Part shown: positions 3,001 through 63,742 of the stretch, piece after piece
How the letters are laid out: every line of letters starts with the position of its first letter
Position numbering within the stretch: the first letter of the stretch is position 1
Origin: Gnetum montanum
Taxonomy: Eukaryota; Plantae; Gnetophyta
DNA: 64,000 bases
NCBI GenBank assembly: GCA_015680685.1
Contig: MNCI01001197.1
Span: forward strand, 356,056-420,055
Reading direction: 5' to 3'
Translations under genes and position numbers: made by a program
Notes under the pieces: model-generated
Told to the model about the DNA's origin: nothing
Databases searched by the model: none
Seen by the model: only the letters and a program-made list of their open reading frames with translations

Positions 3001-3350
3001 AAAAGAATGACTAATGACACTTATTTGCTAAATATAAATATAAGGGTAGCACTTATGATGAATGAAGTGCACAAAACATACAAAAAACAATAACGTGATG
3101 CCCAAATATGAAAAGTTGAATTAAAACTAGAAGATAAGGTTCTCTATTAGAATCCCATGTATATGACTCAACAAACTAAGTTTCAGACATTATGGAAAGG
3201 ATCATACATTATGCACTTAGATTTTCCTTTTGGGGCTATGATAATTTACCATTCAATAAGCCCTCAAAAGAACATACTAGTCAAAATCCAATAATTGAAA
3301 TCCTTTATAAACTTTCAAGTAACCAACCATAATCAGAACACCTTGACCTA
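1..3350 (+). pseudogene. pol: Gypsy pol pseudogene (protease tail, RT, RNase H, integrase)
   Basis: Hand translation gives LNPKLKLIVKKEVKKLLKVGFIY..SKWINP..WRVCIDFR (RT, ~740-900), HVMLDAFN..LG (RH, ~1615), PFDLWEIDFIG and TSYHPQAN (INT, ~2455-2760). Many stops and frameshifts. Confidence 0.9.
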
Positions 3351-4274
3351 AGAACAAGCTCACTTTATTTTTTGAATATTCTCCCTACAACTTTGTTATG
3401 GGGAAAAGGTCCATCTACCTTAATCCCTTGAAGAGGATAGTTTTTCTTCTTCCTTTTTTACATTGTTCTTTATATGTGTTTCATTTTTTTTATACTTTGA
3501 TGTTTACTTTATATATTTTACTTTTTACTTTTACTTTGATTTGACTCTATTTACAATAGCTGATTTTATTTTATTGCTATTGTAAACTTTGATGATTGCT
3601 AAATGCAGCTATCAAGATTATAGCTTCTTATAGAGGTCAACTTTATCTTTAGATTATGCTCTCTACTAATGAATTATCACTTTTCCATAGGTATTAGGTA
3701 CGAAGCTCATGATATCCATCATTCCATCTATCTCATAAGGAGATCTATATCATGGTAACATGATAGTTCTTTCACATAAAAACTAAAAAAAATAATATAT
3801 GATCTAAATAACCCAACAAAATGAAAAAGGATTGAGTGAGAATGAACAAGGATGTGACCTCAAGAAGATTTGTTAGGTTTTCTTTTTGAGTTCTTTCTTA
3901 AGTCCTATGACTCCTCATGGAATGTATCTTCACTTCTCTTGTAAATCGTAAAAAAAATTATGTCTTTGTAACGTGTAGTGTCCTTCCAAAAACAAAAAAG
4001 AATAAAAGCACATCTCTCTAAAGATCTCTTGGGATACAAGAACTAGTTATGGGGCTATAAATACATGTTACTAATGCATGAAAGCACCCCTAGTAGAACA
4101 TAAGCCTTCTTTCTTCCTCAATAATCTCTAAATTAATTCCTTCTTCTCTTTCCAAAGTGATGCTTGTTCTCTATGATTTTTATGGATTCATGATGGAAAG
4201 AAAGAAGGAACGCATTAATGCAAGGCCATTACTAATGGTGTTTACTTGTTCTAGACTTAGAACAAACTAGTATC

Positions 4275-5369
4275 TATTAACCTTTTGTTATGTCAAAACC
4301 TTAAGGAAAATGGAGAACATAGATTGTTTGTTGTGGATGATGTGTTTGCAAGACATGAATAAGAACTCAACATGAGAATTTAGGACTTGAGAGAAACAAG
4401 ATCCATAATGAGAAGACAAAGTAAAGACTATGTGGGCAAGATGAGAACATGGATGAGCATGGATGAAAATGAAGGCTAAGAGACAAATGAAGATGTTTTG
4501 AGGATTGGAAAGAAGAAAAATTGATAAGAGAAAGCCTTTAAAGACAAGAAAGTTGAGGAGACATCTACAGTTTTTAGGATACATCTCCATCACAAATTAG
4601 ACATCTTTCTAGAGAAGTCTCATAAGAAACATCCCATTTTTAAAGGAGATGTCTCTCTAGAATTTGGGCCAATCTCATGTAGATGTCTCTACCATGAAGA
4701 AGACGTCTACACTAGCCGTTCAGTAGTTGTTGCATGAATTCCGACAAGTTTTTGAAAACAACAAGGCTATTAGAAGATAACAAATTCTTGGGAATTGTGT
4801 AAGCACTATTTACATCAAATCAATCATTGTCTTATCTATGTTATTGAACTCTTATTCTTCATTGTAATATCATTTTTTTGTTGTATGTTCTATTGAGATT
4901 TAACTATAAGGACTTGTAAATTTAGTTACATTATTTCCTTGTGTCTTTTTCTTTTTCTTGTAGCCCTATGAGATTAATGTGCTTCTTGAAACAAGGCATC
5001 CTCATTAAGCTTGTTAGAATCCTACGGGATTGAGTGGTTTTGAAATGTTAAAATAGTCTAATGTAGAGCTTAATTTTGTAAATGTTTTAGGATCCTTGAA
5101 ATAACATTCTAAGCTTGTTGGGACCTTACAGAGTTGATTAGTTTTGCAACAATGAAATACTTTGATGTAGAGCTCAAAGGTTGTATAGGGTGTGGTATCC
5201 TTCAAATCACATTTTTGAGAAACAAAGTTTGGAGATGTACAAGGGTTCTACCATATAAGTGTGGAGATACCCACGCTAGGAAACCACATAAAAGTTGGTA
5301 TGTTCGTGTGAGTAGTATAATTTTAATTTAGGAACTTATTCAACCCCCTTTCTAAGTTCTTGATCCTCA
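4275..5369 (+). repeat. 5' LTR of the Copia element
   Basis: Aligns end to end with 8662-9755. Starts TATTAACC (decayed TGTTGA) and ends ...gatcctCA directly before the PBS. Confidence 0.9.
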
Positions 5370-5371
5370 AG

Positions 5372-5383
5372 TGGTATCATAGC
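5372..5383 (+). promoter_or_regulatory. PBS for tRNA-iMet (TGGTATCATAGC)
   Basis: One mismatch to the canonical TGGTATCAGAGC, 2 nt after the LTR end. Confidence 0.85.
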
Positions 5384-8661: not shown

Positions 8662-9755
8662 TGTTGATGTTTTGGTATGTCAAAACCTTAAGAAAATGGA
8701 GAACATAGATTGTTTGTTGCAAATGATGTGTTTACAAGACATGAACAAGAACTCCATATGAGAACTGAGGACTTAAGAGAAACAAGATCCATAATGAGAA
8801 GACAAAGTGAAGACTACACGGACAAGATGAGAACATGGACAATCATGGATGAAAATGAAGGCTATGAGACAAATGAAGATGCTTTGAGGATTGGCAAGAA
8901 GGCAAATTGATGGGAGAAAGCCTCTAAATACAAGAAATAAAAGTTGAGTGTGCATATAATATTTTTAGAAGATGAATCCATCACAAAGTAGATGCCTCCC
9001 TAGAGACATCTCACAAGAGGTGTCCCATTTTCACAGGAGACGTCACTCCAGAATTGAGGCTAATCTCTGGTAGATGTCTCTACCACAAACAAGATGTCTA
9101 CACTAGTCATTGGATAGCTGTTACATGAATTACAAGGAGTTTTTGGAAATTCCAAGGCTATAAAAAGATATGAAATTCTTGAAAATTGTGCAAGCACTGT
9201 TCACATCAAATCAATCATTTTCTTATCTATGCTATTGTATTCTTATTTTTCATTATTATTTCATTTGCTTGATTGTATATTGTATTGAGCTTCAACTAAA
9301 AGGACTTGAAAATTTAGTTACATTCTTATATATTTTTATTTTTCTTCTAGCCCTACAGGGTGATGTGCTTCTTGCAAGAAGGCATCCTCGTTGAGCTTGT
9401 TGGGATCATGTGGGATTGAGTGGTTTTAAAAGGTTAAAACACTTTGGCGTGGAGCTCAATTTTGTAAAGGTTGTAGGATCCTTAAAACCACATTCAAAGC
9501 TTGTTGGGGCCTTTTAAGGTTGAGTAGTTTTGTAGTGATGAAATAGTTTGGTGCAAAGCTTAGACCTTGTATAGGGTGTGGTATCCTTCAAACCATATTT
9601 TTAAGAAACAAAGTTTGGAGGTGTGTAAGGATTCTACCCTCTAAGTGTGAACATATCCAAGTTGGGGAACCATGTAAAATTTGGTGTGTTTGTGTGAGTG
9701 GTGGAATTTTAATTTGAGAACTTATTCAACCCCCCTTCTAAGTTCTTGATCCTTA
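8662..9755 (+). repeat. 3' LTR of the Copia element
   Basis: TGTTGATG...gatcctTA followed by the TSD GTATC. Confidence 0.9.
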
Positions 9756-15390: not shown

Positions 15391-16433
15391 TGATGAGTGG
15401 CGAGGTACCCCTACACTCAACCATATGAATACGAGCGTGCACGCACGATCCGGTCGAACTCTGCAAACTAAATGCCTTAACACCACAAGAAACACTTGGG
15501 GTTAATCATTCGTTGTCTTCCCAGGCTTGCTTGTAAGTGTCACGGTGTATGGTTAAGCAAGTCTGAGGTATGTGATTTTTTTGGTATTTTTCAGTTTATC
15601 TTCTATGCTATCAGAGGAAAGGGTTGAGAAACTAACTAACTCTAACTAATGTCCTAAGTCTAAATTAACTAGCGTCAGCATCCGTTCCCACTTACCGGAC
15701 ACACCCTGAACTATGCAACTGTGGCTTACCAAATGCTAATCGTTACTGGGATCACCACACGTAACGCAAGTGCTCGAAGTGGTCGTACTGAGGCACCTAT
15801 TTAGCTTAAGTGTGATAAGCAGCCGATTCCTTAGCTAGCCGTACACACCCGTGGGTGCTCGTAACTAAGTCGTACTTATCACACGTTCTAGCCTAGCAAT
15901 GAGTAGCTGATTCCTTGACTAGCCGTACACATTGGACTACCACTAGGATTATCAAGCGCAGAATCCTAGAATACGCTACTGGGTTACCAAGCAGCCAATG
16001 CTCGTAATCAAGTCGTACTCATGCGTTGTGCCAAGCAGCTGATTCCTTGACTAGCCATACACGTTCGTAGACGCTCGTAATCAAGTCGTACTTGTGCGCA
16101 CTAGGAAAATAGTAAATAAACAATAATAAAACCACATGCTGCAAGGTTTATCCAATCAAGTTCGTCTTTATTGCCGTACACAACTTGGGTTCAGGTTACA
16201 AGCTGCTCGAATAAAGAGCCGTTCACTCTAGGTCTCCTACTGTGGGTACATGGGGAAAAATTCTAACTCTAGAGTGATCAATCTGCCAGAGCTTCGCTAC
16301 TTCTAGCCAGGATTGGGAAATAAGGGGAGTGCCGCCTCTTATTTATAGATATGGCGGCAGACCGCGATATCGCGTATGCGATATCGCAGGGAAAGACGCG
16401 ATATCGCGGCACAGTGCATGTCACGTCTCATCA
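15391..16433 (-). repeat. 3' LTR (1043 bp)
   Basis: TGATGAG...ctcatCA, adjacent to the PPT (minus strand AGTCATGGGGGGTA, 16434-16447). Confidence 0.93.
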
Positions 16434-21794: not shown

Positions 21795-22866
21795 TGATGA
21801 GTGGCGAGGTACCCCTACACTCCACCATACGAATACGAGCGTACACGCGCGATCCGGTCGAACTCCGCAGACTAAATGCCTTAACGCCACAAGAAACACT
21901 TGGGGTTAATCGTTCGTTGTCTTCCCAGGCTTGCTTGTATGTGTCACGGTGTATGGTTAAGCAAGTCTGAGGTATGTGATTTTTTTGGTATTTTCGGCTT
22001 ATCTTCTATGCTACCAGGAGAAAGGGTTGAGAAAACTAAACTAACTCTAACTAAGATCTAAGTCTAAATTAACTAGCGTCAGCATCCGTTCCCACTTGCC
22101 GGACACACCCTGAACTATGCAACTGCAGCTTACCAAACGCTAATCGTTACTGGGATCGCCACACGTAACGCAAGTGCTCGAAGTGGTCGTACTGAGGCAC
22201 CTATTTAGCCTACGTGTGATAAGCAGCCGATTCCTTAGCCAGCCGTACACACCCGTGGGTGCTCGTAACTAAGTCGTACTTATCACACGATCTAGCCTAG
22301 CAATGAGCAGCCGATTCCTCAACTAGCCGTACACATTAGACCCGGGAGTTACCAAGCGCAGAATCCTGGAATACGCTACTGGGTTACCAAGCATCCAATG
22401 CTCGTAATTGAGTCGTACTCATGCATTGCGTCAAGCAGCCGATTCCTTGACTAGCCGTACACGTCCGTAGACGCTCGTAATCAAGTCGTACTTGAACGCA
22501 CTAGAAAAGCAGGAAATAAAGCAATTAATAAAACCACGTGCTGCAAGGTTTATCCAATCAAGTTCGTCTTTATTGCCGTACACAACTTGGGTTCAGGTTA
22601 CAAGCTGCTCGAATAAAGAGCCGTTCACTCTAGGACTCCTACTGCGGGCACATGGGGAAAAATTCTAACTCTGGAGTGATCAATCTGCCAGAGCTTCGCT
22701 ACTTCTAGCCAGGATTGGGAAATAAGGGGAGTGCTGCCTCTTATTTATAGATATGGCAGTGGACCGCGATCTCGCGTACGCGATATCGCAGGGAAAGATG
22801 CGATATCGCGTACGCGATATCGCATGGGATGCGATATCGTGGCACAGTGCATGTCGTGTCTCATCA
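21795..22866 (-). repeat. 5' LTR (1072 bp) with a minus-strand TATA box (CTATAAATAAG, ~22740-22750) and a GCGATATCGC palindrome array in U3
   Basis: Aligns with 15391-16433. Confidence 0.93.
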
Positions 22867-23278: not shown

Positions 23279-26126
23279 AAAACTGAATAACTTGAGGGTA
23301 CTTATTTTTTAATCCATATTAGAAGGTATGACTTCTACTTGGTGTAAAGAGTCCTAAGGTTATGAAGGATGAAATGGTCAATCCATCAGATATTGGAATT
23401 TGAAGAATTAGAGGTTGAAAAGAAGATTTGAACAATATCATTAGAGATAAGAGATCATTATGAAGTTAAAATTTCTAAGGTAAGGTAACATAGATGTTAA
23501 ATAATTCTACATTAAATTTTTTTTATCTATTCCATTAAGCTAAAGTAAATTGGAAGGATTATGAATAGGCTTCAATCTTCTTAGAAAGTCTCAAAATGAT
23601 GTATTGATAGGAGTCATCCTTCTATGAGCCACAAACTTTTAATAAGACTTAAGATTTGGTACTCAAGGTTGAAAAGAAATTAAGTGGATTTGGAAATAAG
23701 AGCAAATCATATTTCAAGGGAAAGGAGAAGGGATTCAAATCTGAGAAGGCATCCAAGTATAAATCTAAAGATAAGGATGGTAGCCATGACAAGAAGATTG
23801 AAGGAGATGATGAGAATCATAAAGACAAGAAGGACCAAGGTAAGGGAGACAAGGGTCAAGGTAGTAACTCATCAAAAATCTAGTGCTTCAAGAATGAAGA
23901 ATCGGGACAAGAAATGAGAATGTTTACTTTACAAAGTAGCTAAGATTAAATATTTTTAAACCATGGAGGTAGAGGAGACATCAAGCTGAGGTCTTTAGAG
24001 AGGTATCCTAATGCTATAAAAATTAAGTTTTTAAGTTAAATTCTTGTGCATTCATGGGAAATGTTAATAGATAAGATCATATATATAGAAAACTATTATT
24101 TCAAATTGGGGCTAGATGTTTACTTAGTGGGAAATGGATTCATATTTTGATTGATGAGGAAGCCCAAGAAAACATTATTTCTTCTAGGGCAGTCGCTAGA
24201 TTAGATTTGGTAACTAATATTCATTCTAGATCATATAATGTGCATTGGTTATCTAGAAATGTTTCCCAAGATGTAAGGAAACATTATACTTTGAAATTTA
24301 AAATTGGAGGTTTTCATGATGTTGTAAAGTGTGATGTCCTTCAAATAGATTATGCTAATGTAATTCTTGGTAGACCTTGGAATTTTGATAATGGTGCTTA
24401 GTTTTATGGAGCAAGAAATATGGGGAGTGCAACTAGACCTAATGGAATTCATGAGTTTCTTCCCATGATAGTTGAATAAATGAAGTAGCAAAGCTCACTA
24501 GATTCTTTCTTAATCCTTTTAGAAGAGGGAAAATACATTAAGGAACATGATGAAACAAGTTTTGGTTTTTTTTATAACAATAGTTGCTACTAATCATGAT
24601 GATGTGTAGGTTGAACTTCCTATAGGTGTACTAGGCTTAACAGAGAAAATTCCCAAGATATTTAAGGGAAAATTGGATCAATTATCACCAGTGAGAAATG
24701 TAGAACATCATGTTATTTTCATTCCTAATGCTACCATTCCAAACAAGAGAGCTTACCAAATAGGCCAAATTATCAAGCTAAATTGCAAAGCCAAGTAGAG
24801 GAGTTACTTACAAGTGGCTTCATGAGGAAATCCATTTCACCTTGTGTAGTTCTAGCAGTGCTCATGCCAAAGAAGAATAGTGATGAATGGAGGATGTGTA
24901 TTGATTCCAAGGCAATGAATAGGATAATAGTGAGGTATAGGTTTCTTATTCCAAGGATGAATGATATCCTTGATGTCCTTACCAATGCTAAAATTTTTAG
25001 AAAAATTGACTTGAAGAGTGAATACCATCAAATTAAAATTAGGCCTAGTGATGAATGAAAGAAAACTTTAAAGAAATTGAATGGATTTCTTGAGTGGTTG
25101 TTAAATGTGCCTACAATATTCATGAGGTTGATGCATGATGTATTAAATGATTTGATTGGTAAGTGTTGTATTATCTTTTTTGACAATATTTTGGTATATA
25201 GCTTTAATGAGGAAGAGTACTTGGATCACTTAAGGATGGTGTTTTTTAAGTTGAAGGAAGCACAATTGGTGATCAATGTGAAAAACATCATTTTTTCAAG
25301 AAGGAAATCATATATTTAGGGCATGTAATTTCTAGAAACCAAATTTGGATGGAAGATACTAAGGTAAAGGCTATTAGGGATTGACAAACTCCTAAGAATG
25401 TTGGGGAGGTAAGATCATTCCTTAGTTTAGTAGGTTTTTATAAATAGTTCATAAAAACATTTAGTGGTATTTAATGACCTATGTTTGCTTTTTTGAAGAA
25501 AAATAAAGAATTTAGGTAGGATAATGAATCCAAAGGGAGCTTTGACTTGTTGAAAGAAAATATTACTATTGAATTGCTACTTGCAATTCTAGATTTTTAG
25601 AAGCTTTTTAGGTGGAGGTGGATGTAAGTGGACTTTCCATTGATGGGGTACTTTCACAAGAAGATAGGCCTATTACTTTCTTTTTAAAAAAGTTAAATGC
25701 ATCAAGTAAAAAATATAGCACATATGAAAAGGAACTATATGCTATTCTTCAAGCAATTAAGGATTAGAGGTATTATTTATTGCCGAAGGAACTCACTTTG
25801 ATGATGGACCACAAAGCACTATAGTTTCTAAACTTTCAAAATAAGTTGAGTGCAAAGCATATGAAGTGGGTTGCTATAAGAATTTAATTTTATGTTAAAG
25901 TAAAAAAGTGGAAAGGTCAATGTGATGGTTAATGTGTTATCCAAGGTGCATATGGTTAATTTTAATGTACGTCATGTGAAAGACATGAATGATTTTTCTT
26001 CTTTGAATGAGCATGATATTGATTTTGGGTAGGTTTGGGGGAGCCTCAAAGAGCCATTAATGAGTAGGATAGACCAATGGAGGGACTATCATATTCAAAA
26101 TGAATTGTTATTTAAAAATGAAAAGG
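23279..26126 (+). pseudogene. gag-pol: CRM-like gag C-terminus, protease, RT, RNase H and INT start
   Basis: LIDEEAQENIIS..HSRSYNVHWL..VKCDVLQIDYANVILGRPW (CRM-type protease); SISPCVV..WRMCIDSKAMN..KIDLKSEYHQIKI and IIFFDNILVYS (RT); EVDVSG and YSTYEKELYAI (RH). Confidence 0.88.
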
Positions 26127-26804
26127 TGATGAGCTAGCTAAAATTTGATGCTAGATTACCTTCATTATAGGATTCTCACATTGTCTATGATCAACCCACA
26201 AGTCATATACATGGAGGAATAGTTGAAAGTCAAAGGAACATAAAGATGAACAAATGATTTAATTTCAATTCAATTCCATACTTATGACTATCACTCATAA
26301 GCCAAATCCTAAATTCTCATTGTAGCATATAACATAAGTCCAAGAATGAAAATTTAATGATTATGTCAATTTGAAGCCAAATTATAGTGTACCTCATGTG
26401 AAAGACATGGATAATTTTTCTTCTTTGTATGAGCATGATATTAATTTTGGGTAGGTTTGAAGAGCCTCAAAGAGCCATTGATGAGTAGGATAGACCAATG
26501 GATGAACTATCACATTCAAGATGAACTATTATTTAAAAATTAAAAGGTGATGAGATAGCTAAAATTTGGTGCTAGATTACCTTCATTATAGGAATGTCAC
26601 ATCATCTATGATCAACCCACAAGTCATATACATGGAGGAACAGTTGACAGTCAAAGGAACATCAAGATGAACAAATGATTTAATTCCAATTCAATTCCAT
26701 ACTTATGACTATCACTCATAAGCCAAATCCTAAATTCTCATCTTAGCTCCTAACATAAGTCCAAGAATTAAATTTAATTATTATGTCAATTTGAAGCCAA
26801 ATTA
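25966..26804. repeat. Tandem duplication of a ~420-bp unit (25966-26387 and 26388-26804)
   Basis: Two diverged direct copies, each beginning tgtac(g/c)tcatgtgaaagacatg and ending ttgaagccaaatta. Confidence 0.9.
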
Positions 26805-43410: not shown

Positions 43411-46400
43411 TTGGCATTGTTATTGGAGAGTTTATTTTAGCTAATTACGCTAAGTACTATTAAATAGTGAAATCATACAAAGTCATTGTAAAAAGTAAAT
43501 AACACATCATCTTTTAGAAAATAAATAATAGTATTTTATCTATGCATACTATATCAAAACAAACTAAGATGTCTTATTCTCATAGGAATGATTCACCATC
43601 ACTTGTCAATGACTCTAACCAGCAACATGGCAAAACTACAAGAAATGCTAGTGAGATACCTCAACAATTGAAGGCAATCTATGCACATCCGGACCTCTAT
43701 TATCCAAAATTTGGCTTCATCCTCCATCAAGATGAATAGTTATTTTGGAGGGACTTGGAGGCTAAAAATATATTACCTCCTAATCATTCTATACCTTTAA
43801 CGCTCATGGCAACTCTCATGAAATTGGGGCTTAAACTAGTAGGCTTGGATTACCAAGTAATAGAGCACCTTACCAAAGATTATCATCCAACAGAGGCCCA
43901 TCATAGGAAAGATCAATGCATGGAGGCACGCCATGAAGCCTCCAAGGAAATATAGGTCATAATCCCATTATTTTAGCAATCATAGAAAGAGGGCCTAAAA
44001 TTTCTATTAGGGAAATCTTAACAGCAAGGCTCTCCTCCTTTCAACAAGGGAGAAACAACTCACCAATGGTTATAGTAAACCTTGGTGGATAACCAAGATG
44101 AGGGGAGAACTAGTTTTAGAACCAAAAGAACCTCAAGACTAAGGTCTTATAACTATTCATCAAAAGAACAATCAAGGGACCAAAGAAGAAGGATAATTCA
44201 ACATCACTCTCCTAGTCCTTCATCTTCACCATCCTTCTCATAATCAAATTTTGACATGAGGAACTAGGACCAAGACTGAAGGAGGAATGATCGAGACTAA
44301 GATGAAGATGACCAAAGATCCCATCATAGGAATGGAATAAGAAAGCATAGTCAACAACAAGAAGAAGGGAAGCATAATTAGAAAAGAAGGCATAGCAAGT
44401 CACATCATAGAAGACATGACCATGATAGGGACCATTGTGAACATAATGACTATGATGAACTACTTCTTACTAGAAGAAATATGATCAATATTCTATAAGT
44501 ATTTTATATTCCTAGTATTAAATGGATATCTAAATCAAACATCTTGACATGAATAAAATTGCTAAATTTGAAGGTGGATCTAATGATGATCCACAACATC
44601 ATTTGGAAGCCTTCCATGAAGCCTGTGCATTGTAGAATATTCAAAACAAGTATCCAAAACTTAAACTATTTCCTAGGATACTTATTAAAGAAGTTAAAAG
44701 TTGATACAATTCCTATGAGCTAGAATCTATTCATAGATGGAGCATAATGCTAGAGCTATTCAATGATAAGTATCAAACATACTCAAAGGTGTTCAACTTG
44801 AGAAAATACATCCATGGGTGGAAAAAATGTAATCATTGGTCCTTTAATGTAGCCTTGGAAAGATATTACTCTCTTTGCCATCGATGCCCATGCCATGATT
44901 TTTCTCAAAGGGAATAGCTTGGCCAAGTAATAGATGGTTTTAGGAACAAAATCATAAAGACCCTTGGAGTTTATGACCAAGGAAGATTTTCAGAGATGAG
45001 GACCCATCAAATACAAAGGCTTATCAATCAATTGGCTAAGAAATAAGGAGAACTTAAAAAAAGAGAAAGTGTAGAGGAGTATAATAAAGATCCCTCCATT
45101 CACAAAAGGAAGGTATATTTTTGTGGTCCTGAGGAGGAAGCACCACTAGACAAAGTGGTACAAACAAAAATCTTGCCGATCCAAAAATGTATCATAGGGA
45201 TATTAGCTAAGGTGGACAAAATGTGAGACTCTTTGGATGAGAATTTTCATATAGCTCTAAAGATTGTGGAGAAGAAAATGAAGTAGGAGAATTGAGATAA
45301 GAACAGAAAGAGAAGAAGGAATACAAGAAAGAAATTCTATTAGTAGAAAGGTAAGGCTATAATAGTTGATGAGATTGTAGATTCTAAAACATATGAAGAA
45401 GGATGTAACATATGTTAATATGAATATTTTAAGGAATTCTGTCTTATATTATCACACTTACAAAAATATGAGGTATATGCTTTAAATCCAAAGTCTGTAA
45501 AAAGGAAACTACCCAAAATATTACCTTATCCACAAGGTAATTTTCAATAGAAATTCCACCAACCATAGTAATATTTAAGTAGAGTACTACCTCAACCTCA
45601 AGACCATTATCACCAATGAAAAAACTCATACACATGGGGGATGCCACCACCAAAGTAGTAATACATTTATCATTATCTAGATATGTATGGTTATGATGTC
45701 CAATAACCTATATTTTTTCATGGCTCTACGAGCCACACTTCCCTCATCACTATTCTCTCCCCGAATATCATAGAACACCTACTCCATGAGCTAAATCTTC
45801 TTCCACTTATCCTTCTCATTATCTACAATATCATCTTTCATCCTCTAATTTCATTCCTTTGCTATTTTCATCACCTATGGAAGGTAAAATTCCACATCAA
45901 CGTTAACAATGTAATGCAATGAGGGCTGTGAACTTACAATGGGACTACAATTCAAGTGGATCTAAGTGTAAGCTTAAGAAAAGGACTTTCATCAAATTCA
46001 ATAGTCCACCCAAATCATCCCAAAAATCTCTAGATACTCATTCTTCACAAACTACTTTAGAAATTATGAACGAGCCACCTTCAAATCAAAGATTCCAAAA
46101 TGTGCATACTGTCATGTTAACTCATGGAAAAGACCCAATCCTAGAAGTCCTCTAATCTACTCATAAATTGTAGGAAATGATCCATGTAAAGCTCTACTAC
46201 ACTTGGATTTTCAGGTAAACATAATTTCTTAAGAAATATACAAAACTTGGAACCTACATTCACTAAAAAATGTAACATCAACATATAGCTTATTGATCAA
46301 TCCATCATTGTTTCCTTGGGATTTGTGGAGAATATTGTGGCCACCATTTGTAGATGGTCTTATCTAGAGGATTTCTAGTAATCCATGTGGAAAATTGTAA

Positions 46401-48411
46401 GGGAAACTTCCTAATTATTATGAAAAAGGCATGGCTAAGCACAATTGATGCCAAGCTAGGGATCAGAGACCTTTCCTTGGAAATCTTCAAGGAAAATGAT
46501 TTTGGAAAAGTCAAGAAGACAAGGATTCCATGCATCGCATATAATGATATAGGGATTAATTATATGCAAAAAATTTAGGCTATCAGGAGCACATCCATCA
46601 CAACATGTAATAAGTATGCCAAAACATCAAATTTTCAAAGGTGGCTATATGCAACAACCATAAAACAAGTAGATACCTAGTGGCGAACAACAAATGATAG
46701 ATCTAGTTCAACAATATGCATTGAACCAGTTGAGGTCCTCACAAGTGCATAGATTGATAAGATAGATGAAATGGAAAAAAATTTAGAATTAACTCTTCCA
46801 CACATAAGTAGAAATGAATGAGGAAAGGTTGAAATTTTCTAATGATTTCAAACAAGAACTCCTTGACTTCAAAACTTTACAAGAAACTTTGGAGTATGTA
46901 TTTCTTAATAATGATAGGTTGATAATCATCAATGTCAATTATATGATGAACTAACTAAATCTATGTATATGCCAACATCGAATCTATACAGACTCCACCA
47001 TCAAACCTAGAAGGAAATCGAAGAGAAGAATAAATCCCAAGATGAAACAAGTTGTCAAAAATGAATTTGATAAACTTCTTAAGGCATGATTCCTATATCC
47101 TATAGCAGAAAGTGAGTGGGTAAATCCATTGATTATTTTACTAAATAAAGAAGGACAATGGATGATCTATATTGAATTTAGGCTATTGAACATGGCCACA
47201 TTTAAAGATTATTTTCCATTACCATTTGTGAACCAAGAATTGGATATAATTGTAATACACCATGACTATAGTTTTTTGGATGGGTATAATGACTATAACC
47301 AAATCCAAATTATAGCAAATAAACATGCCAAGATAACTTTTACAAGTTTTTGGGGGAATTTTACATCAAAAGATGTCCTTTGGCCTTTGTAATGCTCCTA
47401 CAATATTCTAATGCTTAGTCCTAAGAATCATTTAGCAATATATTGATAGTGGTGTGGAAGTCTTCATGGATGAATTCTCTACTGATTGTACTAACTTTGA
47501 GTAGGCATTGAACCATCTTTAGCAGGTACTCAAATGATGTGTAGAAACAAACCTACAGTTCAATTGGTAGAAGAGCCACTTAATAGTCAGAGATGGCATT
47601 ACCTTAGGCCATAGAGTTTTGAGAAAAGGAATAGAGGTGGAACCTACAAAAAGAAGGGTCATCGGAGGAATAACCAAACAATCTCAAACTATCAAAGATG
47701 TGAGGTCATTCATTGTTCATACTAGTTCCTATAGGCGCTTCATAGAATATTTTTCTAAAATCAACAAACTACTAGTAGAGCTCACCAAAAAAGATGCAAT
47801 CTTCAAATGGACCAAGGAATGTGAACAAGCATTCCAAAACTTGAAGAAGAAGATCAAGCTCCAATTCTACATGCTCCAGATTGGTCCAAACCATTTCATA
47901 TCATGATAAATGCATCTAACTATGTCTTGGAAGTGGTGCTTACACAAATGGATGATCAAAAACATCCATATTATATCCATTATGCAAGAAGGAGAATTAT
48001 GGGTGTGTAACTAAACTACACCACCACTAAAAAAGACCTCATGGTAGTGGTGTATGCCTTAGAAAAATTTAGGCACTATGTGCTTGGATACCCAGTTTTT
48101 GCATAGACGATCCACAGTGTAATCTGATTCCTCATGAACAAACCATCAATAAATCCTTGTGTTACAGGGTGATTTGTGATCTTATAGGAATTTGATCTTA
48201 CCATTATGGATAGAAAAGGGACAAAGAATATAGTTATAGATCATTTGTCTCAGTTAGGATGGAATACCAACAAGGATAAAGAACCTTTATTTGATCAATT
48301 TCTAGATGAACTCCTCTTTGATAAGTCCATCAATGTTAAAACACTAATGATCACAAATTCATATGAGAAGTTCCTCTTATATCTACTCACACAAAAGACT
48401 CCTACTAAATG

Positions 48412-48984
48412 TATGACATCTCATTCTTGGATGTCATGGCAAACATCAAATATACATTATATTAGACATTATGCATAAGAAAATAACATACCAAATGTCA
48501 AATATATGTAACATTTAACATTATGCGTAATGAAAATAATAGGAAAAATGTAGAATAAAAAGAGAAAAATGATTTATTGATGTAGAATAGTGTATCTGGA
48601 TCATGCTTTAAGAGTTTTCCTTGGGGTTTTCTTCCTTCAATATCTATCCCTTAAAGGCAATCCAACACTGCCACCATGGTTAGGCCTATAATCGACCATA
48701 AGGGATTGCCAGTCCTCTTCCTGTGCCACTTCACTTGGCACTCATTACTCACCTTTACCAACTTTGCAACTCCATGCTAATATGACCTCGATGCCTAGGT
48801 ATAAATACCTTAGGTTAAACTCCCAAAGGACACCTCAAAAGACACATCTGTTATTACAACATGTCCTTTCAAGCATTAATTACAACTCCCTTTTTATGTC
48901 TATCTATGATAATGATAACACTTGTTATGAAGAGGTTCCATATTCACTATGCAACAACACCATTTTGAGAATGGAAACATTATA
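48412..48984 (-). repeat. 3' LTR (573 bp)
   Basis: Aligns with 50793-51363. ORFs 48764 and 51170 in the track are duplicated shadows of this repeat. Termini are TG..CA decayed to TA..TA. Confidence 0.9.
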
Positions 48985-49399
48985 ATTTACCCCCCTTGGC
49001 TTATGTTCATCCTCAAATGAATCCATGTTCACTATCTATTTCCAACTCCAATGCTCCTTTTTATGTTCCTATGCTTGAATAATTTGATTTCTTCTTTGAA
49101 CTTGAAGTTGTTTCTTGCTTATTCTATAAACAAGACATATCTAAGAAGAATTTATATAAATATTAAATATTATTTTATCAATACTTACTTCATTTTCTAG
49201 GATAATGACAAGATTTGAATTGAAGATTTACTACCACCAATCACTAGTCCTAACCATTGTCACACAAAGTGCAACTCGTATCTAGTTATCCAAGTGAAAG
49301 GTAGGTAAAATCCTTATTTTCAACTTTCATTACCATTGAAATTTTACTTATAAAATTAAAAAATAAAGAAAATTATGAAAATCATAAATAAAAGTAATG

Positions 49400-50722
49400 T
49401 TAAGATACTTCCTGATCTTGATCAACCTTGGGAATCATTGGAAGTAATTGTAGTTCTACCATGAGTGGTATATGATCATATCATCTTATTCGGGATGGCA
49501 AAGCTTGATCTTAATTCATCTCAATTTCTTCTTTAGAAATTCAATCTAATAACTTGGTAACTTGGAATAATCGAATATTGTACTAAATATAATCTTGGAT
49601 CTTAATGAATAATGTTGTTGATCCATCTTCATTAATCATGAGAAAGTAATTACTGAACTATGGTTCTTGATGAGTACCATCCATTAATATCATCTGTTCC
49701 TAAATTCTCAAATCTGATTTATTTATTGGAGATTCAAAGTAAGTAGAATATACAGTGATTAATGGAATTGCATGTTGAATTGATGGAAACATCTTCTTCA
49801 AATCAAGTTCATCTTCCAAGGATTCCTTTACACATCCATGTTTTAAGAATTGATAAACACTACTTCCAACTTTCACATTGAAGTCTTCACAAAGGACAAT
49901 TGGCACTAGATTGGTATATTTTAAGAATAACTTGGTCTTCAAACTTTCCTCTATTTTCTTAATCAAGTATGTCCCTTGACATAGTCTAACATCTGGACAT
50001 GTTGATTTGGCAATTAAATGTATGTTGATCATGCATAAATATCTTCATAATAACTCAATTTTTACTATCACTACCAAAACAACGTGGTTTTTCTAGAACC
50101 TTGATTGTTCTTTCTTTCCCATGATTTGAAGTTTTAGGATTTCAAAAATCATATCTTTTAAACTTCATTCAAATCTTTATATTAATTCAAACTTGGCTTC
50201 TTCATAAAATATTCCACAACCATCCATGTTGTGATTTCTACAATAGGCTAATTTGCATGGCTCAAAAGAAGGACTTTCAAAAGAATATTTTTGCTTATAA
50301 ATGTCTCTATATCCCATATTTTTCAAGTCTAGTTTGAATTGGTATAGGAATTCCCATGGCAAGACTTCTTCTAGGAATAAGACATCAACATCCAACTCTT
50401 GTAACTCTACTAAGATGTGTGGGTATCAATTCTCATGCCAATCCAAGGCCCATGGTGAACAAAGCAAATGTTGTCTCTCGCTAGCTAGGAAACTTGCAAG
50501 CACATTGTATGTTGCAACTTTCATTCTCATTCTTGAATTTTTTTTTGGACCATTACTCTTTATGGATGTCATACACCTTGTCAAAACGAGATTATCACTC
50601 TCCATGTTATTCTACTGTATGATTTGGTTGCACTTCATGGTTCTTTTATAGATGTATGGATCATCTTGGAGATATGACACATCTGGTCATGGTCCATGGC
50701 TCTCCTTGGATCTTGGCTCCAT
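49400..50722 (-). pseudogene. Intronless CCR4/nocturnin/PDE12-family EEP deadenylase-like ORF (441 codons, ~13 in-frame stops, no frameshift)
   Basis: Single-frame hand translation: MKVATYNVLA..CSPWALDW..ILVELQELDVDVLFLEEV..DGCGIFY..KNHVVL..CMINIHL..DVRLCQ..PIVLCEDFN..GSSVYQFL..EP*FSNY..QDYI*Y..LPS..YDHIPLMVEL. Includes track ORFs 50177-50395 and 49700-50032. Confidence 0.88.
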
Positions 50723-50792
50723 GATTAACCATCAAGTTGTAGTCAACCCATGGTTTTAATTTACCCTTGGGTCATGGTTTTCTTTGATACCA

Positions 50793-51363
50793 AATATCCC
50801 ATTTCCAAATGTCATGCCAAACATCATATATATGTTATACTGGACATTATGCATAAGAAGATAATATACCAAACATCAAATATAAGTAACATTCAACATT
50901 ATGCATAAAGAAAATAATAGCAAAAATGTAGAAGAAAAAAGAGAAGAATGATTTATTGATGTGAAATAGTGTATCTGGATCATGCTCTAAGAGTGTTCCT
51001 TGGGGTTTTCTTCCTTCGACATCTATCCCTTAGAGGCAATCCAGCACTGCCATCATGGTTAGGCCTATAACCTACCAAAAGGAATGGTCAATTCTCTTCC
51101 TGTGTTGCTTCACTTGGCACCCATTACTCACCTTTATCGACTCCACAACTCCATGTTGATAAGACCATTATGCTTGGGTATAAATACCTTAGGTCAAACC
51201 CCAAAAGGTCACCTCAAAAGATATGTCCGTTATTACAACATGCCCTTCTAATTCTTAATTATAGCTTTCCTTTTAGATATATTTATGATAATGATAACAC
51301 TTGTTATGAAGAAGCTCCATATTCACTATGCAACAACACCATTTTTGGAATGAGGACATTATA
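50793..51363 (-). repeat. 5' LTR of the CCR4-carrying element
   Basis: Adjacent to the PBS; aligns with 48412-48984. The last few bases next to the PBS are eroded. Confidence 0.88.
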
Positions 51364-54300
51364 GAATGGGATCATAGGAAGAAACAATATTTTCTTCACC
51401 AAGTCAAACATTACATGGAGATTAGAGGCAACCTCTACAAGGTTTATACTAATGTCCTAGTACGATGGTGTGTATCCAATGCAAATTAGTTGAGAATTCT
51501 CTAGGACACTCATGAAGGTACTTGTGCAGGCCACTATGTAGAAAGGAGAATAAACACTAAGATTCTTATGGCAAGATGCTCACCATTTCTCTTGTTCATG
51601 CAAAATGTGTCAACTATATGGAGGACTGACCATCTAAATGGAAGGATCTCAATAGTGGACTCAACCACTAAAGCCTTTTGACCTTTGGGGTATTTATTTG
51701 ATGAGAATCATTACTCCCATGTCTAATGGAAACGCCTACATTATTGTCAATATTGACTACTATACTAAGTGGGTTAAAGCTAAAGTAGTATTTGATTATA
51801 CATCTATCATAATAGGCCAATTTTTCTAAAAATATGTAGTAAACTGGTTTGGTGTGCCTAGAGCACTGATTTCATATAACAAAACACATTTCATAGGTTC
51901 TACTTTTTGCAAGTTAATGCAATTCTTTGGGGATGAAACATAAATCCATAACACATTATCATCCCCAAGCTAATGGTCAAGCATAGGTCACTAATAGGAA
52001 AATGATAAGAATTCTAATGTGAACCATTAGTAGATATAGGAAAGATTGGAGCACCAAACTCAACAATGCCCTTTAGGCATATCTCTTAATGTGGAAACCT
52101 TTTATAGGTACTCTCAATATGAGTGAGTGTATGGAAAGTTACCAAAACTTATAATTCAAACTAAAATTTGTACAATTACAACTACATGTGAACTTGAGAT
52201 AGATAGTAATTTAGCACAAAAATAATGACGCATGATACTTCATGTGCTAGATGAAAACTGAAAAGTAGAACTAATGATGAATGATGTGCACAAGGCACAT
52301 AATAAACAACATCACAATTCATAGATAATGTAAGTTACATTCAGACTAGGAGATAAGGTTCTCTATTAGAATCCCATTCATGTGCCACAACGAACTAAGC
52401 TCTAGACATTATTCAAAGAATCTTACATTATCCATTCATCTTTTTCATCTATGGCCATGAAAATTTACAATCCAAGAATCTTCTAAAAGCACATGTTAGT
52501 TAACACCTAATCACTTTAATCATTCATGAAATCCCTTTCTTCAACTTAGTCTTGGGGGAGTTATCTAACAACCATAAAATCTTGAAAGGGATAACTAATT
52601 TTTCTTCCTTTTATTTTGTAACATTCATTATATGTTTTCAAATTTTCTTAAAATTTTATTGGTTATTTTATATATTTTCCTTTTTCCTTGTTATTTATTA
52701 TTCTCTTGTCATTTTATTATCATCTTCATCATGTTTTATTTGAAATCTTGGATTTTATTCCACTACTACTATGAATTTTGGAAATTTTTAAATGTAAATA
52801 TTAAAATTATGATTGATTACAAAAAGATAAATTTTTTCCTTGGATTATATCCTCTATTAATAGTCTATTATTTTTTTTATGGTATCAAGTAATGAGTTCA
52901 TAACATCCTTCCATTTCATCTATTCCATGTAGATTTTACATCATAAGATCATGAAGGTTCTTTCACATTGAAACTAAAAAGTAACATGTAATCTTGTTAT
53001 TCAACAAAATAGAAAAGAATAAAGTGGGAATGGAAAAGGATGTGACCTTAAGGACATCTATTATGCTCTTTTCTCAACTTCTTCTTAAGTTCTATGATTC
53101 TTCATTATTATACCATCACTTCTACTATCGACCATAAAAGAAAACATGTCTTTGCATGGTGTGGTTCTTGTACTAATAATAATAATAATAGAACAACAAA
53201 AATAAGAATAAAAATTCAAAGCACATCCCTTAGATAATTTCATGAGCTACAAGCACTAGTTATGGGGCTAGAAAGACATGTTACCCATGCTTGAAGGCAT
53301 CCCTCTAACTAAGGTTCTACCTACTTCCTTCTTTTCTTTTCTTATTCTCTTGGAGTAATGGTTATCCTTGTGGTTCTCATGGACTCTTAATGATAGACAG
53401 TATGGACTATGTCAATGCAAGGTCACTATAATAAAAATGGACTTGGTCTGAGCTTAGAATGAAGAAGTATCAAATCATCTTAATCACATAATTCACCAAG
53501 GATCTTTCATGATCAAAAAGAAAATAACCTATCCATTATTCTCTATCTACCATTTACTTACTCTGCCATCTATCATATCACTACCTCTTACCATGGTAAA
53601 TTGATAAATTTACTTCTAGTCCACATAATCCTAAGATAATACCTTATATGAGTATAAAATTTAGCTTAACTTTAAATAAACATACATCATCCTAGGTGCC
53701 TATGGACTCCTTGTGGTGAGGTTATGCAAGGATATATTAGGCATACATCTACTTTGGGGAGGACCCACTTACATCACTTTTTGTTTACCTTATGTTAAAT
53801 TCCCCAACCATAGGTCAATTTCACACTCAATCATCTCAATAACCTTAAAACATCTATTTTTTGTTCTATCTTCTTATCAAAATATCCTTTAATAACTCAT
53901 CCTATGTCCTCTAATTGCTTCTATTTGATGAACCATAATCTCTTTTATGTTGTTTCTATAATTATCCAACTTTTTGACTTTCATTTGGCACTTATTTCAA
54001 CCTAAAACTCATCCAAAATTCCTTAATTTTCAAGTGAAAAATCTAGCTATGAATAGCCACATCAATGCATCCTTGTTGACATAGTGGAATGAGTTGACAC
54101 AACCCTATTAATACATAGCATATTGGAATGAGCAACATTTCTTCCAAATACCAAAGGAGTTTTTACCTTTTTTAAAGCTAAAGAACCTTCCAAGAGCTCT
54201 AACTTCCAAATCCCTTACCTATATTTGAACATTCTTCTATCCTCAAGCTACTGAAGGTATGCTTTACGTTGTGGAAGCATTAAACATTAGGGTTTCATAG

Positions 54301-59284: not shown

Positions 59285-62200
59285 ATGGATTCCTACCATT
59301 CAAACACAACAGCCACAACCGCCATGGTTACCGTAGACCCGGGCGTTGCACCCGTGAACCCGACGGTGGCCATGGGGGCGGCAACAGGTACTACCGGTCC
59401 TCAGGGACCCCTGCGCCGTTCATTGAGGCGTCAGGGGAAAGATCCCATATTCACGGTCATAACCCCTGAGGACTACAACTTTATCTGCGTCAAGATTCAG
59501 GCGAGCTTGGCTCTCAGCCGAGCCGAGCTTGAGGCAAAGCGCAATTTCGAGTTGCTTCACCGAGGGGGTTATGATTTTAAGCCCACGGTTTACGATATAA
59601 TCCCCTTAACCGAGCACCATAACGAGCTCATCTCTCAATTGATCATGGCCAGAGGCCAGGCTGCCCAACCTGTGGCGGAACCCCAGCGGGAGGAAGACGC
59701 GGAGGATGAATTCGCGGCCATGTCGGAGAATTCATTCCATACTTTGCCCCCCCACACACAAGAAGACCCGTTGTTTCCTTTTGACGGAGAGGCAGCCTCT
59801 CTTAACCCAGCTGCAACCACGCAGGCACAACTTTCTGGCTTCCCGCTAGCCCAGACACAGCTGTCTGAGTGGCAAACACAACCACTGCGCCATGATGCAG
59901 GGGCGGGCCCGTCCCAACACGTACTCGGCATCCCAGCGGGGGTTTCGGTGACCACTGCGCCTCAGTCCATCCCTCAGGTTCAGGCTCACACTGTACCGAT
60001 GACTCGCCCGGCGCAAAGGTTGCTGCCCCCACCAATGCAGCAACATACTTTGACCATGCCACAGCCACCCTTTCACCATTACCCTGCGACAAGTCAATGG
60101 ACTGACCCTGCTGTGCAACAATATCCGTCTGCCCTTTACGATCCCCGACCCCCGCCGACACCAGCGGCGCAATTCTCACAGGTGCTCCCTCGTTATACTT
60201 ATCACTACGGCCCGCAGCAGGCGATCGTTAACCCCGCGACACAAGTCAGTGGGTGGAGGCATTCACAGGTTTCACAGCCTGCAGGGATCCCTGCTCTACC
60301 AGCGGGTAACCAACCACTTCCTGCGCTTCAGTTCCCTAGAGCTGTTCATCCAACCCAACCTCCTCCGCCCATGCCTGCTGCACAGCCGCCTCCTGCAACA
60401 GGTCTGGATCAAGCGTTCCAGCTTATCCAGACGCTTACCGAAGAGGTGCGACGCCTCAAGACTGCTGGATCTGACACTATTCAGATTACGGACTTCTACC
60501 AAGATGATCCAATTAATCCAGCGGTCCCCGCCCTGTCGTTGCCTCCAGGGATGTCTCTCCCACATTTCACGAAATATAATGGGGAAGGGGATCCCAACAC
60601 GCATTTAGCCACCTTTAGATCCGAATCCCTGTTGCTGCAACAGTGGCCACATACTTTGGTCCGGGTCTTCGCGATGTCGTTAACCGGGAAGGCTTTGGAC
60701 TGGTATCGAGCTCTCCCACGCTCCTCCATTTCAACCTTGGAGGAGCTCCTGACCCAATTTGTGACCCGCTTCAGATACAACATGAAGCCGGAAGTCACGT
60801 TGGAGCAGCTTATGGGGGTGAGGCAAGAGCCGCTCGAACCAGTCCAAAAATTCATACAGCGTTGGAATGCCACCTTGAATGAAATTCGTGACCCGATCGC
60901 GAATTCCCACCTGTTGGCTATATTCAAGGGAGCAGTCAATGACTTCATTAAGTCAAAGCTGTATTATCTTTCCCCCGGAGACATACGCCAGGCCTTTGCT
61001 CAGGTCCGGAGCATCCAAGATGCTGCGGAAGCTAGCAAAGATCCGGCGTACATCGCCTATAAGAACACGCATAGCAAGGCTAAGGACAAGGGCAAAGCAG
61101 CGACCACTACTGTAGCGGCATTGGCTGAGAGTGCCAAGAGCAAGAACAAGGCCGCTCCTGCAACACGACCCCCTGAGGCCGCGGCTGGTGCTACCACTAG
61201 TCAAGCCACGGCTGCCCCTGGACAAACGCCCCAGCCAAAGCCGAATTTTGAGCGTAAGGACCGTTCAAAATACGCGGCTCTGCCCATGAAACACTCTGAA
61301 CTGCTGAAACAGCTGTTAGCAGCCGGACACATTCAACCTAAGAAGGTGTCCGAGGAGGCCCTAAAGCGTCACAGACGCAATTGCGAATTGCTGAAGGACC
61401 CCTCTCTTGCTCTGCCTAACGAGCCAGCGGTTCCGAGATCTTTCAAGCTGGACCGTTTCTGTGACTACCACCAGATGTGTGGTCACGACACGGATTACTG
61501 CTGGGCGCTGAAGGATGACATTCAGCGCATGATCGACGAGGGTCATCTGAAACTAGACAGCAGTAACCCAACACGTCCAGAAAACCAAACATTACAGGTG
61601 TACAAGGATCCGCTAAATACAAATTACGATCCTTATACGATCAATGTGGTGAGTACGGACAGTGAGCGTAAAGGGCCGCCAAAGCAGCCTTTTGTTTTGC
61701 GTGTGCCCACTAGCTCACAAAGTGGGGCAGCTCTTTCTTCGGCAGCAGGTGGGGTCTCACGGCCGCCGTTCATAATACGGGCGCCTTCTCAGGCACGGCC
61801 TCCGTCACACGCTACTACCCAAGCCGCAGCTTCGTCTGCGCCCACACCAAGAGCGCCCTTTATCATTAGGGTGCCCCAGCCACAGGTTGCTCCTCTTGCG
61901 CAGGGGCAAACCTCCAAACAGAACCAGCAAGCGTCATCTCCTAAGCGGAAGGAGAAAACAATGCAGCCTAACGCAAACAAAGATAGTTCTACGCTCGGCT
62001 TCCCGAAGCCTAGGCCCCTGGCCTCTGTGCCCATGGTCATGCCCCAGAAGCATGTCACAGGTGCAGGAATGCAGTTACCTTCTTCTGGTAGGGAGACAAA
62101 TAACCCCTCTTCTGACACCGCCCAGCCTCGAGAGATCCGTCTCTTGGGCCGGATGGAGGAAAGTAAGGGGGATAAGCCAGCCTGCCGGGAGAAGGATCTC

Positions 62201-62727
62201 CTCGACGCGTTCACGCAGGTTAAACAAGCTCTCAAGCAGAAAAACACGACGCTGAGCTTGTATGACCTCTTGATGACTTCTCATGAACACCGCGAGGCTA
62301 TGGTACGCATGTTGACGTCCATATCAGTGGATGCCAGCCTGCCAGCGGAAGAGGAAGCGATACACGCTATCATGTTTCCTTCTGCGGCTGAAGAAACCAA
62401 GCCCACCTCATTGACCTTTCTGGACGAGTCTGTTAAAGATGATCCAGAGAAAGGTCAAGTGACAACGGAGCCAATGTTCATCACCATTCGGGTCGGCCAA
62501 TACCGGATCCGGAGGGTGCATGTGGATGATGGCGCGGCTGCTAATGTCGTTCCCTATTCCATCGTGGATAGGTTGGGTTTGGTCGACCAGATCACTCCCA
62601 CGACGACTGCCTGCGTAAAATCCTTTAATGGAGCACGGGTCCAAGTCAAGGGGACGGTGCGTATTGAGTTTGTGGCAGGAAATCAATTCCCCACGGAAGC
62701 CACATTTTTAGTTGTCGAGGAGATGCC
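59285..62727 (+). CDS. gag: Intact Gag-protease polyprotein (more than 1140 aa up to the gap)
   Basis: Pro/Gln-rich N-terminus; Retrotrans_gag motif (FTKYNGEGDPNTHL..FAMSLTGKALDWY); Tat/Ogre-type knuckle CDYHQMCGHDTDYC; SLYDLLMTSHEHREAM; protease RVHVDDGAAANV. Confidence 0.93.
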
Positions 62728-63742
62728 NNNNNNNNNNNNNNNNNNNNNNNNNNNNNNNNNNNNNNNNNNNNNNNNNNNNNNNNNNNNNNNNNNNNNNNNN
62801 NNNNNNNNNNNNNNNNNNNNNNNNNNNNNNNNNNNNNNNNNNNNNNNNNNNNNNNNNNNNNNNNNNNNNNNNNNNNNNNNNNNNNNNNNNNNNNNNNNNN
62901 NNNNNNNNNNNNNNNNNNNNNNNNNNNNNNNNNNNNNNNNNNNNNNNNNNNNNNNNNNNNNNNNNNNNNNNNNNNNNNNNNNNNNNNNNNNNNNNNNNNN
63001 NNNNNNNNNNNNNNNNNNNNNNNNNNNNNNNNNNNNNNNNNNNNNNNNNNNNNNNNNNNNNNNNNNNNNNNNNNNNNNNNNNNNNNNNNNNNNNNNNNNN
63101 NNNNNNNNNNNNNNNNNNNNNNNNNNNNNNNNNNNNNNNNNNNNNNNNNNNNNNNNNNNNNNNNNNNNNNNNNNNNNNNNNNNNNNNNNNNNNNNNNNNN
63201 NNNNNNNNNNNNNNNNNNNNNNNNNNNNNNNNNNNNNNNNNNNNNNNNNNNNNNNNNNNNNNNNNNNNNNNNNNNNNNNNNNNNNNNNNNNNNNNNNNNN
63301 NNNNNNNNNNNNNNNNNNNNNNNNNNNNNNNNNNNNNNNNNNNNNNNNNNNNNNNNNNNNNNNNNNNNNNNNNNNNNNNNNNNNNNNNNNNNNNNNNNNN
63401 NNNNNNNNNNNNNNNNNNNNNNNNNNNNNNNNNNNNNNNNNNNNNNNNNNNNNNNNNNNNNNNNNNNNNNNNNNNNNNNNNNNNNNNNNNNNNNNNNNNN
63501 NNNNNNNNNNNNNNCCTCAAACTAGCTCACTTTACGCTTTACGCATTGGCCCGCAATGGCCTTAAACTAGTAGCTATTTTACGCATTACGCATTGTTTCG
63601 TAATCTATTCACGCTTGTGGCCCGCAACGGCCTTAAACTAAAAACAAGACACCAGATATGACAGATAGCTGATAATCAGTCAATTTATAATCTCTTAAAA
63701 CTTTCAAAAAAATCGTTCTTGACGCAATGATGGAAAACAAAA

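Follow-up and report, generated by a model that had tools for sequence, protein, structure and literature searches.

The stretch of DNA considered here, referred to below as the window, comprises 64,000 nucleotides of the Gnetum montanum genome (contig MNCI01001197.1, positions 356,056 to 420,055). On its minus strand lies an inserted unit of ~2.95 kb (48405-51359) which, judging from its layout, is a structurally complete, non-autonomous long terminal repeat (LTR) retrotransposon devoid of gag, protease, reverse transcriptase (RT), RNase H and integrase. The homology searches support the view that all that it recognisably encodes is an intronless nuclease of the exonuclease-endonuclease-phosphatase (EEP) type and of the CCR4 kind. 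The reading that we favour, with a probability of roughly 0.7, is that of a non-autonomous LTR element, present as an old and dead copy, that carries a diverged CCR4-type nuclease gene in sense orientation, 58 nt after the primer-binding site (PBS). The locus is dead, with nothing functional there now, and it is a case of gene capture by an LTR element with a type of cargo not met in the literature searched.

Anatomy of the element

The features of the element are as follows, all of them on the minus strand.

50793-51358 (minus strand): 5' LTR, with its TG start at 51358 and a decayed 3' end on the PBS side; 85% identical to the 3' LTR
50781-50792 (minus strand): PBS of tRNA-iMet type, TGGTATCAAAGA, matching at 10 of 12 positions and directly following the 5' LTR
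49400-50722 (minus strand): cargo open reading frame (ORF) of 441 codons with 13 internal stops, then a terminal TAA
49403-50578 (minus strand): homology to CCR4-type EEP nucleases in a single frame (tblastn, 121/403 identical, E 1e-39; ANGEL2, CNOT6/6L and PDE12 in the PDB; Pfam Exo_endo_phos, E 0.039, on an 82-aa piece)
49003-49399 (minus strand): AT-rich internal tail 3' of the ORF, without Rfam, tRNA or BLAST match
48990-49002 (minus strand): polypurine tract (PPT), AAGCCAAGGGGGG, read from the sequence; 13 nt, purine-rich, 10 nt before the TG of the 3' LTR
48414-48979 (minus strand): 3' LTR, with TG at 48979 and CA at 48415-48414; its true end possibly extends up to 48407

The two LTRs are direct repeats of ~566 bp that show 85% identity over 555 bp. 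Across 563 aligned sites they differ by 68 transitions, 20 transversions and one indel column, which gives a Kimura two-parameter (K2P) distance of 0.18 and a transition/transversion ratio of 3.4. A TATTTATA box at LTR position 173 (51186-51179 and 48807-48800) and an AATAAA at LTR position 402 (50957-50952 and 48578-48573) are kept in both repeats, an arrangement that would be compatible with a U3/R/U5 layout. The PBS, the PPT and the ORF all have the same sense. Because PBS-type sites with two mismatches occur window-wide at the level expected by chance (5 seen, 4.2 expected), the weight of the PBS comes from its position against the LTR end only. Taken with the PPT, these features bear out the original prediction, made from the letters alone, of a complete mini-element bounded by two LTRs and equipped with an iMet-type PBS.

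The same prediction was right in stating that gag and pol are absent. Pfam searches of the stop-free pieces matched Exo_endo_phos alone, no zinc knuckle was found in any frame of the element, and the element showed no similarity to the gag ORF located elsewhere in the window (see below). Rfam returned no match within the element at E<=1, nor within the whole window at the gathering score, and a tRNA scan gave no match. The element shows no trace of an mRNA poly(A) tail, and neither a related LTR nor a second copy of the element was found elsewhere in the 64-kb window.

Insertion into an older repeat

The element is flanked by the two parts of an older repeat, of which another copy is present near the start of the window.

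46353-48404 (plus strand): left flank, older unclassified repeat (the insertion target), ~70% identical to window positions 19-2118
51360-53304 (plus strand): right flank, rest of the older repeat, 67-69% identical to window positions 2117-4091
19-4091 (plus strand): second, paralogous copy of the host repeat, an "empty site" without a break at 2117/2118

The flanks of the host repeat stop at 48404 and restart at 51360, and the paralogous copy is unbroken at the corresponding point (2117/2118). Segment 48405-51359 therefore moved as a single insertion. The host repeat itself, at least 4 kb long, is present in the window as two ~70% identical copies, one of which hosts the CCR4 element; Pfam searches with the ORF pieces of its flanks gave no match, and it stays unclassified.

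The element had also been described as having a near-perfect target-site duplication (TSD), a claim that the comparison does not confirm: the best candidates, TATAA upstream and TACAT downstream, agree at 3/5 positions only. At the empty site the sequence is TATAG, and the CA of the LTR is separated from the resumed flank by a few extra bases. This suggests that the original target might have been TATAG-like and has since decayed, and a degenerate TSD is compatible with decay at a K2P of 0.18.

The cargo frame and its catalytic motifs

The ATG of the cargo frame is at 50722, 58 nt past the PBS, and the frame spans 74% of the internal region, in keeping with the earlier description of an ATG soon after the PBS that opens a 441-codon frame filling about three quarters of that region. 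Stops are found at codons 12, 37, 99, 182, 186, 210, 226, 341, 355, 380, 394, 404 and 414, six of them TGA, five TAG and two TAA. As tblastn with the intact CCR4-type ORF L003:6973-8583, described below, yields a single segment in one frame (frame -1, 50578-49403, 1176 nt), the nuclease domain is free of frameshifts and introns, as had been noted from the letters. Just 67 unrelated codons stand ahead of it.

The translated frame contains the EEP motifs YNVLA, LEEV, DGCGIFY, NIHL, CEDFN, DYI and DHIPL, in the order given in the original prediction. The catalytic and metal-binding residues are all at aligned positions, namely the N of YNVL, the E of LQEV, the D and N of GDFN, the D of LDYI and the D-H of SDH. 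In the GDFN motif, the G is replaced by E (CEDFN).

Identity of the nuclease

For the searches, the frame was read as stop-free pieces or with X at every stop, and Pfam was run on its six longest stop-free pieces. PF03372 (Exo_endo_phos), the family that had been expected, was the sole Pfam match, on an 82-aa piece (E 0.039), but at 14.2 bits this match is under the cut-off of 24.5. Sequence searches of the PDB with a 114-aa piece ranked ANGEL2 best (E 3e-6 versus 0.1 for CNOT6L), and with the 82-aa piece there was a tie; the PDB matches were ANGEL2, CNOT6/6L and PDE12, and no plant CCR4 surfaced among them. The PDB alignments place the glutamate of LQEV and the D-x-N of GDFN in register.

An exhaustive phmmer search with the 114-aa piece against 1.84 billion representative proteins gave 15 matches below 1e-3, the best of them 35-40% identical. 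The top ten were looked up, and the named ones among them are all called Ccr4/CNOT6. With X at the stops, the whole frame matches an intact protein encoded on the metagenomic contig L003 (described below) at E 4e-45. The divergent clade that includes this protein is 28-30% identical to the frame (124-158 bits), and canonical streptophyte CCR4 homologues 1/2 are 25-27% identical (112-124 bits, E 1e-29 to 1e-33). The EEP/CCR4-type identity first proposed is thereby upheld, with E values of 1e-39 to 4e-45 to intact CCR4-type proteins over the whole domain.

The apurinic-type endonuclease (APE) of long interspersed nuclear elements (LINEs), the identity that could have overturned this assignment, was rejected, since neither the PDB and Pfam searches nor the all-protein search produced an APE/LINE match. 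Viral and prokaryotic contig collections scanned with the 114-aa piece contained no relatives. A megablast search of a phage collection, an uninformative choice of collection, gave no match.

Closest relatives

The top relative is an intact intronless ORF of 537 aa at L003:6973-8586, on plant-like contigs of JGI metagenomes. Exo_endo_phos matches it in full (E 3.5e-22), and zf-C6H2 weakly at the N-terminus. L003-type genes share ~40% identity with canonical plant CCR4. Each 90%-identity cluster of their clade comprises 38-40 distinct variants, intact ones as well as broken ones, and several fragments are sometimes found on one contig. In contigs L001-L004, a ~9.9-kb unit with a 308-bp repeat at its bounds recurs in circularly permuted form. 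Annotation of L003 revealed no LTR pair around the gene, and the opposite strand there holds only decayed fragments of RT and RNase H. The L003-type genes (P0029-P0035, P0038 and P0003, from JGI, ENA and Logan assemblies) match the window ORF best, and they too are intronless, fast-evolving and multi-copy. They differ from it in retaining an N-terminal finger region (the weak zf-C6H2 match), in coming from another plant source and, in the case of L003, in lacking an LTR pair.

The window ORF resembles plant CCR4a/CCR4b, the CCR4 homologues 1/2 that are poly(A)-specific ribonucleases of the CCR4-NOT complex, in its EEP domain, in the N/E/D-x-N/D/D-H order of its motifs and in an alignment that runs over the whole domain. 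In contrast to them, it is an intronless part of an LTR element, interrupted by 13 stops, and the ~240-residue N-terminal part with a zf-C6H2/MYND-like finger (PF15801) that they possess is gone from it. When the N-terminal 160 residues of the L003 ORF were compared with the window by tblastn in every frame, no upstream homology was found. The identity of only 25-27%, together with this absence of N-terminal homology, agrees with the earlier view of a protein strongly diverged from ordinary plant CCR4, with an N-terminus of its own; that N-terminus is also shorter. The zinc-finger region of plant CCR4 binds CAF1, and in fungi and animals leucine-rich repeats (LRR) are the docking module. Judging from its predicted translation, a product without a docking N-terminus would be a free-standing nuclease.

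Probable divergence before insertion and decay after it

In a maximum-likelihood tree, the end branches of canonical CCR4 proteins, from Closterium to angiosperms, measure 0.04-0.3 and that of the window ORF 4.1, and the divergent L003-type clade sits on a stem of 0.76. A grouping of the window ORF with this clade passes the approximately unbiased (AU) test (p 0.4), which is not positive evidence of kinship.

The LTR distance of 0.18 corresponds to ~0.09 substitutions per site per lineage since insertion. At the commonly used plant substitution rates of 1.3e-8 and 7e-9, the insertion would be roughly 7-13 million years old. Some 0.09 substitutions per site could account for perhaps 15-20% amino-acid change, versus the ~70% that is seen. 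Given such divergence in a sequence with 441 codons in frame and every catalytic residue in place, most of the change therefore predates the insertion and took place under coding constraint. A fresh retrocopy of a conserved host CCR4 gene is excluded, as ~70% amino-acid divergence is far beyond the decay dated by the LTRs. The constrained, fast evolution that appears to have preceded insertion may have occurred inside the element lineage or in a fast-evolving host paralogue.

The decay of the copy has a distinct signature. The CpG observed/expected ratio is 0.15 in the element versus 0.40 in the window. TGA and TAG account for 11 stops, with 2 CGA and 3 CAG codons left, versus 2 TAA stops with 17 CAA codons left (Fisher p 0.0005; p 0.005 with TGG counted as a precursor). 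The prevalence of TGA and TAG over TAA matches the order of CG and CHG versus CHH methylation in plants, in agreement with stops having arisen in silenced DNA after the insertion. The single LTR indel predicts about one indel in the ORF, so that the lack of frameshifts since insertion is unremarkable on its own.

A history that would accommodate these observations starts with transcription from the LTR, both copies of which retain a TATA-like box and AATAAA. Reverse transcription and integration would have been carried out in trans by an autonomous partner that primes with tRNA-iMet. The cargo would not have been freshly copied from a conserved host CCR4 gene, as long, constrained, fast evolution would have come before the insertion. 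The ORF might have been open, or nearly so, at that time, to be killed later by methylation-type C>T and G>A decay.

Weighing the alternatives

Several observations speak against our preferred reading of an old, dead LTR copy with a CCR4-type cargo. A single copy was examined, the TSD is degenerate, the PBS carries two mismatches and the PPT is separated from the start of the LTR by 10 nt. As for the cargo, the Pfam match obtained with the stop-free pieces stays under the gathering score, and the maximum-likelihood tree of CCR4 proteins gives the window ORF no supported position. Moreover, the frame contains 13 stops, versus ~4 expected in a uniform model and ~6 in a model with C>T changes only, and the copy may already have been broken when it inserted. 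The proposal that the ORF was intact at insertion is therefore no more than plausible: the stop spectrum and the CpG depletion fit later methylation decay, but the number of stops exceeds what either model expects.

That the locus is not one element, with a CCR4 pseudogene that happens to be bracketed by two solo LTRs or repeat fragments from separate insertions, would agree with the age of the LTRs (85% identical) and with the poor TSD. It is nevertheless very improbable, as the empty-site paralogue lacks the unit precisely from end to end, and the PBS and the PPT, which share the orientation of the ORF, are found immediately inside one LTR and 10 nt inward of the other, respectively. If the unit is a single element, its cargo might still be a one-off chimeric retrocopy, made when the partner's enzyme switched from the RNA of an LTR element to a host CCR4-like mRNA, and never propagated or selected. 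Gene capture by template switching is well documented in plant LTR elements (reviewed in PMC13317346), the window holds a single copy with a dead ORF, and divergent, intronless, multi-copy CCR4-like genes that are possible sources occur in other plants. Against this stand the sense orientation of the ORF, its start 58 nt from the PBS, its extent, which takes up the internal region, and the fact that no mRNA poly(A) remnant is visible; we regard a one-off capture as quite unlikely.

Another proposal is that the nuclease was a selected, element-encoded effector, acting as a free-standing deadenylase without the CAF1-docking N-terminus. Such an enzyme could shift the RNA of the element or its partner from translation to packaging, or it could hinder restriction of retrotransposon RNA by host CCR4a-type proteins. 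The frame and the catalytic motifs have been preserved despite ~70% divergence, which implies coding constraint before insertion. Furthermore, in Arabidopsis the host CCR4a binds and deadenylates the RNA of the Evade LTR retrotransposon and suppresses its transposition (PMC12501189), and a plant Gypsy lineage provides a precedent for a fixed, active RNA-modifying enzyme (PMC9289625). However, the copy found here is dead, its GDFN motif has undergone a G>E change, and the constraint could equally date from a host-paralogue phase before capture. Selection for an effector function is a real possibility that we hold to be doubtful. The fullest version, in which the locus is the fossil of a propagating, high-copy LTR family whose sole protein was a catalytically competent CCR4 nuclease without a docking region, selected for manipulating poly(A) tails of its own or its partner's RNA or for countering host CCR4a, appears unlikely.

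What the locus means hinges on whether the rest of the family keeps the gene open. If there were a family with a docking-less CCR4 as its sole gene, control of the poly(A) tail would be a contested step between plants and retroelements, and a family that keeps the gene would offer a natural, testable reagent. If the gene were passive pseudogene cargo, it would be a curiosity of transposable-element annotation. A single locus cannot decide between the two.

Relation to known LTR elements

Maize Bs1 and the TR-GAG elements are gene-capturing or non-autonomous LTR elements. Like Bs1, LARD, TRIM and TR-GAG elements, the element in the window has LTRs, a PBS and a PPT without pol, would depend on a partner and has a host-derived interior. 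It differs from them in carrying, at the gag position, an ORF with a complete nuclease domain instead of the usual gene fragments, and its size (2.95 kb) is between those typical of TRIM and LARD elements.

Capture of genes by plant LTR elements is common, whereas fixation of whole enzyme domains is rare, the clearest case being the N6-methyladenosine (m6A) demethylase of orchid Gypsy elements (PMC9289625). These Ty3/Gypsy elements of Phalaenopsis carry an ORF for an AlkB-type m6A RNA demethylase, the activity of which has been shown in vitro (PMC9289625). In both cases, the additional coding content of a plant LTR element is an enzyme of RNA metabolism that derives from the host. The Phalaenopsis elements, however, are autonomous, 25 kb long and have the enzyme ORF beside gag-pol (PMC9289625), whereas the element described here is 2.95 kb long, has the enzyme as its sole ORF and is known from sequence. 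A screen of LTR elements in 121 angiosperms reported 15 atypical domains, none of them EEP/CCR4; it used RT as a marker and was therefore blind to elements without pol (PMC9289625). No report of CCR4 or EEP cargo in an LTR element came up in full-text searches of the literature.

Other repeats and open frames in the window

Several further repeats are present in the window. Two direct repeats of ~1 kb (4296-5276 and 8682-9662; 77-88% identical) lie 4.39 kb apart, with a PBS-like site, TGGTATCATAGC, at 5372-5383; the pair may represent another small, old LTR element. A second pair of ~1-kb direct repeats (15391-16408 and 21795-22810; 90-96% identical), 6.4 kb apart and separated by sequence with N gaps, probably represents the LTRs of a younger element. 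At 26024-26744, a unit of ~421 bp is present in two adjacent copies that are 91% identical.

Finally, an open frame of 1147 codons on the plus strand (59285-62725) runs into an N gap (62728-63514). Its sole Pfam match is Retrotrans_gag, at residues 461-545, and its neighbours in the Atlas are streptophyte gag-only or gag/G-patch proteins. Possibly, a large Gypsy-type element is present here, with this frame as its long ORF.

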